Source: Paragordius varius (lineage: Eukaryota > Animalia > Nematomorpha). From it: a DNA stretch of 64,000 nt. The notes beneath the pieces are model-generated. The model was given only the letters and a program-made list of their open reading frames with translations. It was not told where the DNA came from and made no database searches. The position numbers and the translations under genes are program-made. Shown piece after piece: positions 15,966-59,023 of this stretch (position 1 is its first letter; each line of letters opens with the position of its first letter). The stretch spans positions 12,276,001-12,340,000 of the forward strand of contig OZ176053.1 in the NCBI GenBank assembly GCA_964247055.1. The letters run 5' to 3'.

Positions 15966-18900
15966 ATGTCCTTAGTGTCTAGTTTAAATCAGGATGGAAA
16001 ATATGCCATAATGGAGACGGATATCGAAAGCAATAAATATTTGCTCAAAAAATATTTTGAAGACATTTACAATGGGTACGGATTTTATAATATTAGGAAA
16101 ACGATATCGTTACATCCTATCTTGCAGCAATATATGGATAAAAATGATTTCAGTATTACGCTAGATGCATTTATAAATATTCCCCAGGTTGCTAATCTGC
16201 AACTTGATTCCCAATGCATTTTAGATTTGATCAAAGGTGTTTATTTATTTTATATCATGTAGCAAATGATCATATCGTGTTTGCCGAGAAAGATACTAAA
16301 ATAATACCTATGTATTCTAGTAGATCCTGCCTTATAGTACGGGATATGCCTAGTCACACCACTTTTCAAGTTTTTGAAATAAATATTTTTAGGATATGCT
16401 AAATATTTTTGAGGGAGTAGAGCCAAAACCTCTTTATATTGAGGGTGTTGGGAATGAATGTTGGTACATTTATTTTGAGAAGCGTTCTTCAGCTAATCAA
16501 TGTTATCTTGTTTTGTTGGCCAAGGATCCAACAATTTCTAATAAAGTATTGCAACTATTGCTTTTGTACAATACAACCATAAAATGATTTAAATTTTTAT
16601 TAATAATTGATTTATTTTGATCTTAGCTAATCGCTGATTTTTGATTAAAGTAATCGATTGGGAGATTATATAATTTATAATTAAAAATGAAAGCATTTTG
16701 CGCCGTGCCTCAATTTCAGACTTAGTAAAATCTATTTGACCTTTCCAAATTATGGCCAATAAATTAATCATTTCTGGTAGAACCTAAATGCTATTAAAGC
16801 GGATTATTATATCCAAATAAAAAAAGTTAGACGCTCCGAATTTTACAAATTTTTAGAATCTTATAGCTAGCGTTTTAAAAAACATGATTAGATTTTTAAA
16901 CGTGCTAAAAAACTTCTTATAAAAATGCCCACTTTGCTTTAAAATTTTAATTTTGTCAATGCTTTTAAACCTACATTATTTTATTTTTCAGCATAGTGGA
17001 GACCCAATAAAAATGTTTTAAGATATAATATCAATGAGGCTTATAACCTAACAATATTCATTAAAGTTCGTTTCCTTGTGAATTTGTTTAAAATTTCCTG
17101 AACATTACACTTATCTTATATTTAACAAATCTCTAAATTAAATTATAGAAAAGTCCATCATTATGAATTATATTAAAAAAGTTTCTATAGAATTTCCACT
17201 ACGCCTTAAAATATGAAAGTTAAAAATTGCCATTATTTAAATATTAAATTAAAATATTTTTGATGTCCATCTAGCATTTATTAAAATGCATATCGAGCAA
17301 TCTCGGTATTTTTCCGAAAAAAATCAGCCCATAAATTCTTATGGAGGCTAAAATTTAAGTTTATTTATTATAATTATTTTTTCTCACTACAGTTTATGAT
17401 ATATTTTAATTTTAAAATTAATCCTTTAGTTTTTACTATAAATTTTATTTATCATATGTGTTCTTCTTTATATGGATTGGATAGCACAAAAGTAGTAATT
17501 ATTTTATTTAATCACTCGTAAGGCCCAAAAACATGAAATCAAATTATATATTTTATCAAGATGTTGTGCATTGTGGATAGTTTATTGTTTTTGGCCTAAT
17601 GGTTTTGTTTTCAATTTTTTTGTTTTAAATGTCTCATAAGCTTCAATACTATAAGCACAATGGCACCCTATATATGTATGTTTTATTTTCTACTAATTTT
17701 GTTTGTACCCTTTCAGTCCAATTTTTAATAAAGAAAATTCGTATTGTTAGATTAACACCAAAATTTAATGATGGTGGCACAAATTTTATTACAGCTTTCT
17801 ACATACATTTTTGTTTTGGTATATAAAATTATGTGCCCGAAATGTATGCTTATCTGGTTAAAACATATAAGGAAACTGTTTTTTAGTGCCCAAAAACTCC
17901 TCCTTTTATTTATATCTTTATTATGCTATTATTGAGTTTCTTTTTGGAGATTCACTTTTTATTGACTTTTGACCCAAAAATGGTGTAAAATTATATTGAG
18001 AAAGTTTGAACGTTTGACCGGTCTAAGCGTTGAATTTGTACTTTTGAAAATTCAATATTCTTTTTTGATTATGTTTCTTAAATAACTTTAATTGATAATG
18101 ATTTAATTTTATTATTAAGATGCGGCCAAAATACAAAGACGCAATTTTACCCGGTAACTTAACATATGCAAAAGCCAAATATAGTGAACAATTTCAAATT
18201 GTTGAAAGCGAACAAAAAGAACAAGAACAACACCCATTTTCTATGTCCCAATCAGGTTTGCCAAATACTTTTTCCTCCTCTGAGCCTATTACTTTAGTTT
18301 TACCCGCAAAGGAGAATCGTAACGCTAATCATGCTGCCACTCCGGCATATAATAACTCAGGTCATCATCAAGGATTCTCTAACATGAATAAAGCCCATTC
18401 TATCGATGTCTTAAATACAGTTACACCCCCTGCTATAATGTATGTAGCTTTATATTTAGTTAGTTATTTACCTTATGTTCTGGTATTTTATTTATAATGT
18501 CGTGTTTTTATATTTTTAGAAAGGATTTGATTCCACCCCAGTTGTCAAATTATGGATTAATAGTCAGTAATAAACAGGTCTATATATATATATATTTCCC
18601 AAAATTTAAGTTGTTTTTGAGAGTTTAATAGATTTTTTGGTAAATTCCTTATTTAATTTAAATTTTCTTAATACATATAATAGCATTATGATGGACAACA
18701 TAAAACTTTGGATTATATTAAGGCATCGTCGAATAATATGTTGTATCCTACCCCACCTTTGCAGCAAAACCAAGCTGGTGCCGGTAATAAGTACGCTACC
18801 AATACCCATTACTTTAACAACAAACAACAGCATTTGGTACCAAATTACAATAATAAAAACGCTCCTTTGGCTTACAAACAACAGCACTTATATCCCTCCT

Positions 18901-21900
18901 CACTACACAACCACAATAATACTGGGATGATAAGCAACAAAAATAATTTAAACAGAAATTCTTCAGAAAGAAACTTAATAACCAACGGATCAGGATCTGT
19001 TTTAAATTCGTTTGTTTTGTCACACAATATATCGCCTTCCTACGCAAATAACATTAGTAACAGTAATCCTAAACAGCAACATGGTTTTGAGAGTGCGAAC
19101 ATTCATAGTGTTAATTCCAACAAACATTCTCAAACAGCTTTTGTTGCAAATCCACAAGGTTATATGCCTCCACCTCCTCCTTCTGCTCTGTTACCGCCGC
19201 CTCTGGTAGGATCTTCAGTTTTTAAGACAACATCAGCAGCGACCCAAAATAATAATTGTGTGAATGAAAATGCGGGACTTATTTTTCCCCCTTTACCACC
19301 ACCTCCTCCACCCTTTATGGGTTCAACTCCATCAACTCTGGCTTCCACTTTACCTTATCCTTCTAACGTTGTTCCCACAAATAATCAATTTGGTGGGCAA
19401 GCAGCACCAGCCAATGTCTTTTGGTGTATGCCTCCCCTCCCTCCATCCCTTTTACCATTACCTCCACACCATCACCCTCATCATCTCCCATTTCCTCCTT
19501 TGCCACATTATCAACAACAAATAATGCCAACACCACCAATGTTGGCTCCAGCTTATCAACAACAGCAATTGCAACGTTCTCAATCATCTCAAAACAATCT
19601 CAACATATCAACCAAACCCCCAATGAATAATGGAAATAGCAACGCATTTTACATGACACCCCGAGGAGTAGATGGTAATATGTTTGCCGGTATGAACAAA
19701 ATGGTCCAAGTACCGCCTGGTCAGGTACCTTTCTTTTTGCATCAAGCTGCTGCTGCGGCTAATTCATTCTTACTCCCTCCTCCGTATCCCCATCATTCAC
19801 AAATAAATCATAATGCCAACAGTATTCACAAGTATAAACTCGCTGCCACACCAGAGCCAGTGAGCCAATCCAATAAACTTCCATACTATCCTCTTAACAA
19901 TAGCAACAACAAGATTAATACTGCTAATCCTAGCTCCATTTCACCCAAAAACTATTCCCCACCTTCCCAAGCAAAAGATGCCTTTATTGTCTCCAAATTA
20001 ACTTTGGCGGCGTGTGGTGTCGGACCTTTATCTACTATTCCGCCACAATCGACAGCCCTTAGATCACAAGTCACGTCTATAAACATGTATAATAGCATAG
20101 CAACTCCCTTTTACTATTATCCACCTCCCCCTGTATCTCAATCAGGAGGAGGAACTCATCTCCAATTTCCTCAAATGCTACACCACCCAACACCTACGCC
20201 CCTTCTGATTCAACCGACCCCACCAACAGAATTAATGAATGATTCTTCCAATGCTTTTCGTCCCACATACAATCAATACGCACCTCGCAACCCCGTTAAT
20301 AACAATATTAATGCCTTTGGAACAAAAAAAGAGGCCAAATCTCATCAGACAAATCATCGAGTTAATTTAAGCTCTCATGATTCAACAGGAATCAATAACT
20401 ACAGTAATAATGGGGGAGGTAAGGCAAATTTCCAAACTGGTAAACCGCTGCCCTTATTGCCTCCACCGTTGTCAGTGGCAACAGCAGTTTATCCAAAAGA
20501 TATCGCCCCTATAAATAAATCCTATGAATACAAATATAAAGGCAAACACAATAATAACATGAGTAATACGGATTTTAATCCGTCAATAACCGTATCTCAC
20601 ACCTTATATAATAGCAATAATTATACAGCGAAAAATCATTACAATACAACTGGATATAAGTATATTGATTTGACCAATCAAAATGCAGTGGACCTACCTG
20701 TCTTTCTATATAACCCCCATTCCTAACAAACTTATATTAATAATTTGCACTTTTTCGATTCCTTTATAAGGACTCTTAAAATTTTCCACAAAATTATAAG
20801 TTTTTTTTGACTAATATAAAATTAAATTTTTATATTTATTTAATGCAGGTTTTTTTAAATTTAAGTTGGGGAGGGTAGATGGAGGTCCACTGTATCGATT
20901 ATAATTTATATAATTATATATAATATATATTTACATAAACTTAGCCGAAATAAACGAGATTTTCAAACTGTAATAACAAGTACCCCGACTTGCTTTACCA
21001 ATTTGGTAAAGTATAACCAAACTAGCAATATCTATCCTCATAAAACTTCTAATAAACACCAAGCAGTAATAGCGAATAGCAAATTTAATCACCATACTAA
21101 CTCTTTGAGTAATGATAATACAAATTCTTTGGCCACGTTTAATAACTCTGAAAGGAAATTCCAACATAAATCTCAATCAGATAATGCTTCTACAAACCTC
21201 AATATTTCTCTTTATGCTGATTCTCGTTTTTCACAAGCTGAAAACACATTCAAACCTAATAAGGAGTATTAATATACACTTAATCTTAAATCTTTTTCAT
21301 TACTTAAATTTTTATTACATTTTTATATCTTTTACTATTAAATAGAATAACACCGAAAAACGCCAGTGAGGCAAAAGCTTCCATAGATTTGGCCAACTTG
21401 GAAAGGTACACTATTTAAACAAATATAATTTTAATGCGAAGTTCGTTAGCTGGAACTTGTTAGTTTGCTAGTTTTCATTACTTCGCTACAAAAATTTAAC
21501 CAACTATCCTAATTACATTGTTTCATCAATGTGGTTATTTGGAATTGAATTAAACATTTTTATTTTAAAACACTATTTACTCTTTTTAAATCATAATTAT
21601 ATATTATAAATTTGTATCTTTAATTCTAGATTATCCATATCTGAACGGAATCATGAACAGGTATTTTTAATGTTTTTACTTTTAACTAATGAATTTCTAC
21701 TAAACTTAACACCAGCATAATGTACATATTATTTAACGATAAATAATTATTTAAATGTTTATGGGAAGCCTTTTATGTTTAATTTTACCAATTTTTTAAT
21801 ATAAATTAGACTGGACTTGTTTTATACTAATTAAACTGGTGTTAAAAAAGAATTGGTATAATTTTTATCCCTAATATCGATTAAAAAATATATATAGTTT

Positions 21901-23637
21901 TTTGACCGGCAAAAATGATTTACGATTAATTTGTAATGCATTTATTAATGGTGGTCATAAGCAGTCAGGATCATTAAATATGAGATATTATAAAACCAAA
22001 AACATAAATTAATCAAATAGATCCAAAATTCAATTTTTATGTGGGATGTTTATCCTTAAACTTTTTGCTTAGTTTTTATAACACGGTCATGAATCTATTC
22101 ATTACTAGTGTTAATTTTAATCTTTATGTTGATTTTTAAGGAAAGTGCAATATGCAGTATAGCAACATCACCCACTCCAACAAATATATTTTTGGATGCC
22201 GTTTTGAATGATGTTGAAGAAAGTTTCATGAACGGAGGAAAAATTAGTTATGCACAAATCGTTAATCGTAAAATGATTGCCAACAACACAAAAATATTGT
22301 CAAACCATCAAATATCACCAAAATCCTTGAAAGCAACCACGTCAATAAATATGAGTGTTAGCCATGTGGTTGATAAGCAAACTATCACGTCCAACACTAA
22401 AACTTGTAATAATGATGTTTTGGTGGCTAAAATCGATGAAAAAATTGTTGCATCTACATTAATTGAAAATGGTAATGCTAAGAATATTAAATCAAGCCCT
22501 ATTGCTAATGAATGGACAACTGCGACAGGACCTAATAATTCTAGGCGACACAGGGGACCCCTGAAAAATAGATCCACTGATTTATCAAAAAATATTGGAG
22601 AAGAATCTGCAAAAGCTATTGTAAGTGCGCCCGCTTCTAAAATTAACGTCCATAATAACATTGAATCTCATTATGCCACATCATCTATTAAAATGACGAA
22701 TAATACATCACCAGGCAGTAAAACAACTACCCAGGGGAAAAATACTTGTTCAACTACATTAGCATCATCAAGCATACTACCTATAGTTACTACTAGCAGC
22801 GCTAGAGTTACAAAAACTCATCAATCAAACATCAAAATTTCACAAAACACAAATAAAACAACAACTGTTAATTCAAACACGACTCAACGTGCAAATGTCA
22901 GGCCTGCTGGTGCCGCCCCTTCACAGACACGTAAAAACAGATCTTATAAATTTAAGCTTTCTGAGCTACCTTTCCACCCTCTCAATGTTCGCGCACGTGA
23001 ATTGGAGAAACAGCGGCTTGAACAACAACAGAAGGGAAGGGAATCGCAGCAAGACTCTAAAACGGTAAATTATGATAAAGATAGGAATGATATTGACTTC
23101 CCACCCATAACTCATAAAAATTCTACTGGGATAGCTAACAAACTGTCTCCTGAAGGCAATCAATCTGACACCAAGCGCAATCACACGTTGACTGATAAAT
23201 TTGAGAGTAATAAATCAATTGCTATCATCACATCTGCAAATGACGCCAAAAATGAATCGATTATAACCGCTAACAATAATGCGAGTTTGGATTCGAAATC
23301 CGTTGCCTCTTCTAATGATGAATCTAGCGCCGCATCATTTAAATCAAGTTCATCAACTTTTTTATCTAGCTCGTTGGATCCTTCATCTCCCCCTCAATTG
23401 AAAGTAAAGAATTTGGAAAATAAAACCTCAACAACCTCCTATTTAGCGACAACGCAACACCCTCCTTCTGTTCGATCCAATTCATATAACCGGGAACGAT
23501 CTGTTAAAAATAATGAGGATAATAAGAATTATTTAAAGATTGACAATAGTGCGTCAAATTCATCTTTAGATAAAAAGGAGATGATGGATACAAAAAAGCA
23601 TACTACTGAAAGATTACTTAATGGTTATGTCATATGA
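15966..23637 (+). CDS. LARP4: La-related protein 4-like (divergent La motif + RRM, long Pro/Asn-rich region), about 1570 aa, 10 exons
   Basis: Exons 15966-16236, 16263-16369, 16393-16545, 18120-18439, 18520-18577, 18723-20659, 20981-21265, 21346-21405, 21630-21660 and 22141-23637 sum to 4719 nt in one frame. Motifs: La-motif-like LLKKYFE...QQYMDKNDFSITLDAFINIPQVANL..DSQCILDLIK; LARP4-type RRM SCLIVRDMPSHTTFQDMLNIF...GNECWYIYFEKRSSANQCY; C-terminal KISYAQIV resembling LARP4 KPSYAEV. The start codon is uncertain (15966, 16011 or an upstream exon). Confidence 0.75.
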
Positions 23638-25829: not shown

Positions 25830-27530
25830 AACGATGAATTAATGAAAGATTTTCCTTTAGCAAAAAAACGAAGAATGAATCATTTGTTAAATGTCTTATA
25901 TGCGAGGGGGAATTCACCCTAGCACATGGAAGCATGATACTACAAAGCATATGGAAACACAGAAACATAAAAAACGTTTAGATATAGCGGCATCCTCTTA
26001 CAAAATAAGCGATTTTTTTCGAAAAACCGCATTTGGAGTGTTTTCACGCCGTTTATCACAATCATTCCTTTAGATCTATGGACTGTATCTAGGTTATTCG
26101 CACATTATTCCATAAAAAAATTACATGTGCCCGTATAAAGGCCAAAGCCATTGTGTGCAATGTCCTTTCGCCACATGCATTTTCTGAAATACAAAAAGAT
26201 TTGCTGAAAATTAATATCTTATCCCTATACTCTGATGCATCAAATCACCATGAAGCAAAATTATTTCCCAAAATTTTAGATTTAATTTCCCTACCCGGTG
26301 TAAATTCCGAAATAATATTTACTCCAATAATGAATATTCTAGAAAAAAATAATTTAAAAGACAAAATTATCGCATATTGCGCTGACAACACCAATACGAA
26401 CTTTGGTGGAAAAGCAAGGAGGGGAACAAAAAATACTTTATAAATTAACAGATAATCTTAATCAAAACATTATTGGCGTTGGGTGTGCAGTGCATATAAT
26501 ACACAAAGCTATTCAAACAGCTGCTGATTTGTTACCCTTAGATGTGGAAAGTGTAGTTGTTAAAATATATTCCTATTTTTATGTATACACGGTACGTGTT
26601 GAAACGATTAAAGAATTCTGTGAAAATGCAGAAATATCAAAAAATGCTTGGATATTGTACAACTCGTTGGTTAGCTTTTATGCCAGCTATCGAAAGTTTT
26701 TTAAAAATGTATGATCCTTTAAAAAATTTTTTTATCACGGGACAAATGTCCTTCAACTTTAAAAAAGTTTTTTGAAAGTGATTCTTCAAAAATATGGTTA
26801 TTCTTACATAATCAAGCTTCTCTGTTTCAAAATGTTATTAAATTTATAGAAGGTGACAAAATTTCGGCAATCGAAGTAGCCAATGAAGTTAGTAACCTAA
26901 AATTCCAATGTCAAGAACGGTTAGAAAATAATTTTATACCATTAATCATCCGTAATATAATAAATAATTTAGAAAAACAAGGAATAATAAATCGCCAAGA
27001 TATCCTGTACCATATAAAAATGTTTTATACAAACTGTAAAGATCATTTGGAAGATTGGACGACGCAATTTTAATAAAATGGATCATTTTCATTGGATAAC
27101 ATTAAAATCAGAATTAATTGGTGTGATGTTCAAAAATCATTTGGTTATATCTGCTCCCAAAAATTCTCAAAAAGTAATCTCAGAAAATGATCTTTTTTCT
27201 GAAGTATCATTAGTTAAAAGATATATTAATAATGAAAATTTAAATTATGGACAAAAGAAAAATATACAGTAGAAAAGAAATGGTTGGAAATATTTCATCA
27301 TTTTGAAGCCAAAAAATTGTGGAATTCGCACTATCTATACCTGGAACCAACGCTGCTACTGAGCGCGTTTTTTTCCACAGTAAATCAGGCGTGGACATTG
27401 GAAAAATCAAATTTAAATGTTGAAACTTTAAAGGCCGTCTTATCTGTCAAATATAATTTGACAAATTCTTGTAAAGACTTTTCTACAATATTTTAAAAAA
27501 TGATGACAATCTGCTAAAACGCATTCGCTC
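25830..27530 (+). pseudogene. Frameshifted hAT transposase
   Basis: Overlapping ORF fragments carry LYSDASNH, YCADNTNTNFGG, GVGCAVHIIHKAIQTAAD, GYCTTRWL and a dimerisation-like segment (..GTNAATERVF..). They are split over several frames by indels. Confidence 0.88.
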
Positions 27531-39700: not shown

Positions 39701-40284
39701 GCAATTATCGCAAAAAAGAGTAAGAAACAAAACCTCTATGGCGATTTGTGTTCTTGTCAAACATTAACATAGAATCTTCAATCTAAAATTAGAATAAATA
39801 TCAAATATCTTTTTATACCTTTCCAAAGTTCTCAAAATATTGTTTAATATCATCAATGTTGGTGTTTACAGATATGCCTCCAATAAAAACTTTTTTCGTC
39901 TTGGTTATTATCTGTGAATAAATTATAAGGATGTAAATTAAACTTTTGGTTGTCCTTTCTTTGGAAAAGCAACTTTAGGATCAATCGTTTTCCCATCAAC
40001 TTCATGATGGCTTTCAGCAAGCACGTTATCAATAGATTTTGGATCCACAAATGTGACAAACCCAAACTTACGCGATCGTTTGGTTTCGGCATCTTTCATG
40101 ATCATACAATCTTGAATTTCACCAAATTTACTAAAATATTCTTTCAGTGTTTCTAAAAAATATCATATATACCAAAATACCAGTAGTGGTCTGCCAATTT
40201 AAGCCTCCAACAAACATTTTTCTAAATTTTAGCAATAAATAATTACCCTTTCTCCGAATTATCTGACTTAGGCGATGTATCCAT
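33770..40284 (-). CDS. msi: Musashi-family RNA-binding protein (2 RRMs) with a long low-complexity C-terminal tail, about 930 aa, 14 exons
   Basis: Exons 40284-40247, 40221-40181, 40152-39944, 39911-39819, 39782-39734, 39656-39574, 39402-39333, 38422-38228, 36947-36643, 36579-36294, 36213-36148, 35841-35680, 35379-34665 and 34250-33770 sum to 2793 nt in one frame. RRM1: [24 protein letters not shown]...[17 protein letters not shown]2: [11 protein letters not shown]...[51 protein letters not shown]. The RRM part is secure; attachment of the tail exons is inferred from splice phase only. Confidence 0.9.

Positions 40285-49123: not shown

Positions 49124-59023
<9,900 letters not shown>

Follow-up and report, generated by a model that had tools for sequence, protein, structure and literature searches.

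The forward strand of contig OZ176053.1 of the horsehair worm Paragordius varius (GenBank assembly GCA_964247055.1) was analysed over a stretch of 64,000 nucleotides (nt), positions 12,276,001 to 12,340,000, referred to here as the window. At window positions 15966-16587 we found what we read as a single-copy gene, in its 5' part or possibly as a whole, that belongs to a micro-intron class of this genome and from which two ultra-short introns, of 26 and 23 nt, must be spliced. The gene would encode a fast-evolved La-module protein, probably the LARP4 counterpart. We put the probability of this reading at roughly 0.75. The assembly consists of 110.6 Mb in 44 contigs, and the GC content of the window is 23-37%. 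The exons given below are from translation, and both introns are putative.

15966-16236, plus strand: exon 1, with ATG at 15966, 90 codons and one further base, the first of an Ala codon that intron 1 splits.
16237-16262, plus strand: intron 1, 26 nt, GTG...TAG, phase 1, GC 19%.
16263-16369, plus strand: exon 2, two bases completing the Ala codon (G, then CA) followed by 35 codons (16265-16369).
16370-16392, plus strand: intron 2, 23 nt, GTT...TAG, phase 0, GC 13%.
16393-16587, plus strand: exon 3, 64 codons and the stop codon TGA 16585-16587.
16337-16342, plus strand: alternative in-phase donor GTACGG, which with the acceptor at 16392 gives a 56-nt intron (donor and acceptor enumeration).

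If intron 1 is kept, the frame ends at TAG 16260-16262, and if intron 2 is kept, it ends at TAA 16400-16402, as given by the list of open reading frames (ORFs). When all GT..AG segments of 18-40 nt were enumerated, introns 1 and 2 were the sole segments joining the frames at their respective junctions. An earlier reading of this DNA from the letters and ORFs, the sequence-only reading, had reported the same coordinates, lengths and retention stops, all of which match the sequence and the ORF list, and had pointed out the in-phase donor at 16337, which is present in the enumeration. The GC content is about 33% in the exons, compared with 19% and 13% in introns 1 and 2, and an A-rich run precedes the AG of intron 2. 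All three exons are free of internal stops and frameshifts, and both introns have typical ends. A paralogue search of the genome found no second copy, and the locus is single-copy. From this anatomy we infer that both introns are spliced.

To compare the frame logic with chance, we counted chains in which GT..AG segments of 18-40 nt connect three open stretches of 90, 35 and 64 codons or more. The null model was a set of 613 simulated versions of the window, both strands, drawn from a first-order Markov model. The real window has one such chain, the LARP4-like locus, and the 613 simulated windows have one in total. For one window this is significant, but at 0.0016 per window and about 1,700 windows it corresponds to about three chance chains in the 110 Mb of the genome. 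With looser thresholds chance chains do appear, and a junk-like example is found at 17285-17823 on the plus strand, about 700 bases from the locus. The frame logic is therefore insufficient alone, and a codon-usage test was added.

The codon score was trained on long ORFs of the HSP70, La, LARP6-like and LARP7-like genes of the same genome, with the trinucleotides of the window as background, and is expressed in bits per codon. Exon 1 scores +0.12 in frame and -0.76 and -0.81 off frame, exon 2 scores +0.14 in frame and -0.63 and -1.04 off frame, and exon 3 scores +0.10 in frame. Taken over the three exons, both other frames range from -0.53 to -1.04, so that the score is positive solely in the proposed frame. 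One Musashi exon, given for comparison, scores +0.15. The junk chain is negative in all its parts (-0.33, -0.25 and -0.07). Its noncoding-like codon usage illustrates that frame logic alone yields false micro-introns in AT-rich DNA.

Ultra-short introns are not particular to this locus. We checked 12 micro-introns of 22-37 nt in conserved genes of the same genome, distributed as follows.

Window 39783-40246, minus strand: Musashi gene, introns of 36, 32, 28 and 25 nt.
140 kb downstream: HSP70 gene, an intron of 28 nt starting with GTT, between Pfam HSP70 positions 90 and 87 of the adjacent matches.
Proteasome beta subunit gene: an in-frame intron of 27 nt starting with GTAAGT.
CCT subunit gene: introns of 28 and 36 nt, the 36-nt one starting with GTT.
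HSP110-like gene: an intron of 30 nt.
LARP7-like gene: introns of 22 and 22 nt, both within its own La motif.
LARP1-like gene: an intron of 37 nt, directly after its La motif piece.

The LARP7-like gene is located at C5:1201343-1204417 on the minus strand, and its two 22-nt GTA...TAG introns are found at about 1467-1494 and 1349-1370. In the Musashi gene, the exon following the 28-nt intron matches the Pfam RRM_1 family (7e-14) from profile position 15 onward, and the next exon covers profile positions 1-24 of a second RRM. The donors of the 12 introns are GTA in nine cases, GTT in three and GTG in none. All 12 are AT-rich, and 11 of them have the acceptor TAG. The same conserved genes also hold longer introns, some of about 60-160 nt and others of several hundred, and the micro-introns thus form a class beside ordinary introns.

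Introns 1 and 2 match this class in their GT/AG ends, length, AT-richness, TAG acceptor and restoration of the frame. At donor position +3, intron 2 (GTT) matches as well, while the GTG of intron 1 has no counterpart among the 12, a sample small enough to allow a frequency of up to about 20%. G at +3 conforms to the general donor consensus GTRAGT. No other donor reaches the frame of exon 2 with a short intron (GT..AG enumeration). The sequence-only reading had called both donors non-consensus. This was overstated, as GTT starts three of the 12 checked micro-introns and G at +3 fits GTRAGT; what stands of it is that GTG was found in none of the 12. Ultra-short GT-AG introns are routine in this AT-rich genome, and the locus is an ordinary member of the class with one slightly unusual donor.

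The Musashi 28-nt intron (40153-40180, minus strand) and intron 2 each interrupt an RRM about 15 residues in, where its first helix begins. This shared position could be a coincidence, or it could be a preferred or ancient one.

The protein domains were searched for exon by exon with profile, PDB and language-model searches, the La motif being divided by intron 1. A putative La motif occupies approximately residues 20-90 of the exon 1 product. The top three ESM Atlas clusters for exon 1 are all La, with scores of 0.87, 0.85 and 0.85, and since these are below the threshold of 0.9 the match is a lead only. Read against the human sequence, the end of exon 1, the split Ala and the start of exon 2 appear to line up gap-free with the final helix and the wing of the La motif in LARP4 (E-K-x-x-K-x-x-P), which is likewise a lead only. 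By reading, exon 2 would cover the La wing strands, the short linker after them and the first RRM strand, with the rest of the RRM on exon 3.

Neither exon 1, nor its second half, nor exon 2 (35 amino acids) matched the La family in the PDB, and exon 2 alone has no PDB or Pfam match of any kind. An AlphaFold model of exon 1 alone had a pLDDT of 45 and was unusable. In a rival alignment of exon 1 with the La motifs of the genome, made by MAFFT, the first La helix falls at residues 5-28 and 27 residues are inserted. We consider it less likely, as the insertion it needs is large and the low-confidence model has the first long helix at residues 20-37. A phmmer match of exon 1 to a bacterial repeat protein was rejected as spurious, since its composition is biased and nine repeats were matched.

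The RRM half gave more specific leads. Searched against 177,635 PDB sequences, exon 3 has a single match, the La module of human LARP4 (6i9b_A, chain 115-157, E-value 1.3). The alignment spans the second and third strands and the second helix of RRM1, including the signature W-Y-I-x-F strand. In the ESM Atlas, exon 3 matches RRM clusters (recognition 2703). By reading, the first RRM strand, LIVRDM, has no aromatic residue. About one chance match is expected among so many sequences, and the one that was found is the family named beforehand.

The same alignment bears on the choice between the 23-nt and the 56-nt intron. RRM1 of LARP4A begins at residue 200 (PMC6486636), and residue 11 of exon 3 pairs with human LARP4A residue 225 in the PDB alignment. 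The gap is 25 residues in LARP4A, and here 24 residues span the distance between the exon 2 Cys and residue 11 of exon 3. The spacing matches LARP4A only if exactly 16370-16392 is removed, which favours the 23-nt intron. The 56-nt alternative (16337 to 16392) costs 11 residues, the first RRM strand among them. The preference of the sequence-only reading for the 23-nt intron is thereby borne out by frame logic, codon scores and RRM1 spacing alike.

Several results weigh against the reading of the locus as a spliced LARP4-like gene. Besides the chance chains expected genome-wide and the GTG donor of intron 1, the E-value of 1.3 for the LARP4 match is not significant alone. The Pfam La (PF05383) and RRM models have no match on any exon at E-values up to 1. 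A genome-wide Pfam La scan at E-values up to 10 gave seven matches elsewhere and none at the locus. When exon 1 was compared by hhalign with the four La motifs of the genome, residues 54-83 only were aligned, with 0.5% probability. A phmmer search with exon 1 against 1.84 billion representatives found no relative, a word-based homologue search with exon 3 gave no match, and neither search returned a transcript-derived protein. The three-residue interdomain linker HKR is invariant in LARP4A and invertebrate LARP4 (PMC6486636). It is absent here, where MYSSRS is read directly between the final Pro of the wing and the Cys that opens the RRM. In LARP4, a PAM2 or PAM2w motif, with the consensus xxLxxxAxxFxP, precedes the La module (PMC6486636). 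None is seen in the 20 residues before the La-like domain, which have an L-N start but neither an aromatic residue at position 10 nor a Pro at position 12. It is possible that PAM2 lies on an upstream exon.

It may thus be that the gene is real and spliced and yet not a LARP4 orthologue, being instead an orphan or another La-module or RRM protein that resembles LARP4 too weakly to be assigned. This is favoured by the negative Pfam results, the weak PDB match, the linker reading SSRS in place of HKR, the lack of a visible PAM2 motif and the La pocket, of whose six residues, by reading, at most one or two are recognisable, the rest being mostly changed. Against it, the sole match in the PDB is to the family named in advance, with the alignment placed at the W-Y-I-x-F strand, and the domain order, La-like followed by RRM, fits. 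Moreover, a census made by reading the Pfam La matches placed La, LARP1-like, LARP6-like and LARP7-like loci elsewhere in the genome and found no other LARP4 candidate, leaving the LARP4 slot otherwise empty. We regard a protein outside the LARP4 family as possible, though distinctly the less likely case.

The label LARP4 La module, given by the sequence-only reading, is partly supported. The RRM half resembles LARP4 specifically, if at an E-value of 1.3. The La half was seen by the Atlas alone, at 0.87, and the Pfam, linker and PAM2 marks described above are lacking. Because HKR and PAM2 are absent and the La pocket is mostly changed, we describe the predicted product as a divergent LARP4-like La-module protein, short of a proven orthologue.

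Another question is where the gene ends. The TGA at 16585 is found directly after the expected last RRM strand, and the protein may therefore consist of the La module only, of about 183-190 residues. Further coding exons are found downstream.

18120-18439, plus strand: downstream coding exon.
18520-18577, plus strand: downstream coding exon, after an 80-nt intron.
18684-20726, plus strand: downstream coding exon, after a 106-nt intron.
22108-23637, plus strand: downstream coding exon.

These exons are of low complexity and rich in Pro, Asn and Ser, and their codon scores are +0.21 to +0.32. They may form a gene of their own or the C-terminal part of the one described here, a question that the sequence-only reading did not raise. 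None of them has a Pfam family above cut-off, and a word-based homologue search with the 509 amino acid ORF at 22108-23634 gave no match. A stretch in 18120-23637, K-I-S-Y-A-Q-I-V, resembles a LARP4 C-terminal motif. The possible donors in exon 3 are a GT at 16546 (phase 0) and one at 16566 (phase 2). A scan of acceptors for a downstream extension gave too many frame-compatible options to decide among them.

With the micro-introns being real, the La module could form the 5' portion of a longer gene of LARP4 type, with an intron of about 1.6 kb leading from 16546 (or 16566) to the exons at 18120-23637. These exons are on the same strand, are coding-like and have no gene between them and the locus. 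The donor at 16546 and the exon start at 18120 are both in phase 0, and an AG stands directly before 18120. In addition, the C-terminal regions of LARP4 proteins are long and disordered (PMC6486636). On the other hand, the PDB alignment runs beyond 16546, so splicing there would remove the expected last RRM strand, and the domain ends just where the TGA at 16585 stands. The exon at 18120 opens with an ATG of its own, the agreement in phase is a one-in-three event, and no homologue connects the parts. We consider such a long gene unlikely, if worth keeping in mind.

A chance chain of ORFs, or a dead gene that is untranscribed or decayed, would account for the relatives missed by phmmer (exon 1) and by the word search (exon 3), and would agree with the three or so chains expected in the genome and with the junk chain nearby. 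We consider it improbable. Codon usage is coding-like in all three proposed frames, and the intact frames and typical intron ends speak against decay. The leads for exon 1 (La) and exon 3 (RRM/LARP4) also come from independent searches. Less probable still is that splicing mainly joins the acceptor at 16392 to a donor at 16337 (56 nt) or 16239 (154 nt, with exon 2 skipped, also found in the enumeration of GT..AG pairs), the 23- and 26-nt segments being parts of larger introns, since both alternatives, although frame-preserving and in the case of 16337 starting with GTA, the commonest start in the genome (9 of 12), remove residues that have a positive codon score and account for precisely the distance that the LARP4 RRM1 alignment requires, and exon 2 is left as an unexplained 35-codon open, coding-like stretch.

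Based on these observations, we suggest that two ultra-short GT-AG spliceosomal introns would have to leave the transcript of a LARP4-like gene for the protein to form. The 26-nt intron, in phase 1, would separate the last helix of the La-like domain from its wing strands, and the 23-nt intron, in phase 0, would fall about 15 residues into the RRM. If either were retained, translation would stop within a few codons. The product would have the La-like domain followed directly by an RRM without RNP motifs that is closest to that of LARP4. The La-module fold and function we infer from sequence likeness; the protein is probably the LARP4 counterpart of the genome and would bind mRNA.

Exon 1 may contain a third intron.

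16076-16096, plus strand: candidate 21-nt intron, GTACGG...TTAG, phase 2, in frame and stop-free (hypothesis).

Being in frame and stop-free, this segment is invisible to the frame logic, and for that reason it escaped the sequence-only reading. Its removal drops seven residues, YGFYNIR. The GC content of 0.24 is like that of introns 1 and 2, and the codon score of -0.33 bits per codon is intron-like. By reading, without these residues the segment is collinear with the fixed-length FS..NL..D.FL stretch of the four other La motifs of the genome. However, seven in-frame GT..AG pairs of 18-40 nt occur inside the exons, and the candidate is therefore not statistically special. The MAFFT rival alignment also counts against it. 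That 16076-16096 is a third micro-intron is in our view a possibility at somewhat less than even odds. The hexamer GTACGG is common to the donor of this candidate (16076) and the alternative donor of the 56-nt intron (16337).

Going further, we speculate that the lineage of this worm could be a further, independent case of animal introns of less than 30 nt, forming a separate, 5'-biased class beside normal introns, and that the gene would have three of them. Optional retention of the 21-nt intron would then give two forms of the protein that differ by seven residues within the La-like domain. We offer this scenario tentatively and think it doubtful as a whole.

Alone, the locus matters little, as it is one more gene whose reading needs introns of 21-37 bases spliced in this genome. 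The first publication of this size class in animals dates from 2026 and concerns two parasitic groups. This gene, like many others in the genome, will be broken up by gene finders that bar introns shorter than about 30 nt. A fast-evolving RNA-binding protein can also escape the standard domain models when micro-introns cut its domains as well. Both the GTG donor and the possible 21-nt intron without a stop make useful test cases for the minimal signal that can define an intron.

Two other features of the window were observed. Overlapping ORFs at 26093-27269 (plus strand), which surfaced in the scan for ORF chains, look like a decayed, frameshifted transposase, possibly hAT-like. An ORF of 345 amino acids at 50106-51143 (minus strand) has a tail rich in His, Arg and Lys and no Pfam family.

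Compared with the La module of human LARP4A (PDB 6I9B; PMC6486636), the predicted product shares a putative La-type domain, a very short linker and an RRM apparently without RNP aromatics, and the module is of similar size, about 165-175 residues. Unlike LARP4A, it has no Pfam-detectable La motif, HKR is replaced, PAM2/PAM2w is missing and the pocket residues are mostly changed. LARP4A also continues into a long C-terminal region, parts of which bind PABP and RACK1, whereas the ORF described here may end right after the module.

Within the genome, the micro-introns of the conserved genes are like introns 1 and 2 in being 22-37 nt long and AT-rich with a TAG acceptor, and several of them are located within La motifs or RRMs. 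They differ in that their junctions are fixed by strong homology, whereas at the LARP4-like locus homology is weak and one donor is GTG.

The closest published parallels come from myxobolid myxozoans and Dicyema japonicum, which have ultra-short GT-AG introns of 20-30 nt (Hadjez et al. 2026, PMC13644364). In these the 5' signal has shrunk to 'GTa', a few A residues precede the AG, there is no polypyrimidine tract, and conserved genes are affected (PMC13644364). The main text of that paper does not mention horsehair worms. The introns described here are likewise GT-AG introns in conserved genes of an animal, with a 5' signal of approximately GT and one base, A residues upstream of the AG and no polypyrimidine tract. 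In myxobolids and Dicyema, however, the ultra-short size is the genomic median (22-27 nt), whereas in this genome such introns stand beside longer ones, from about 60 nt up to several hundred nt, in the same genes. Unlike in those species, nearly all micro-introns of this genome end with TAG, and GTT donors are frequent.

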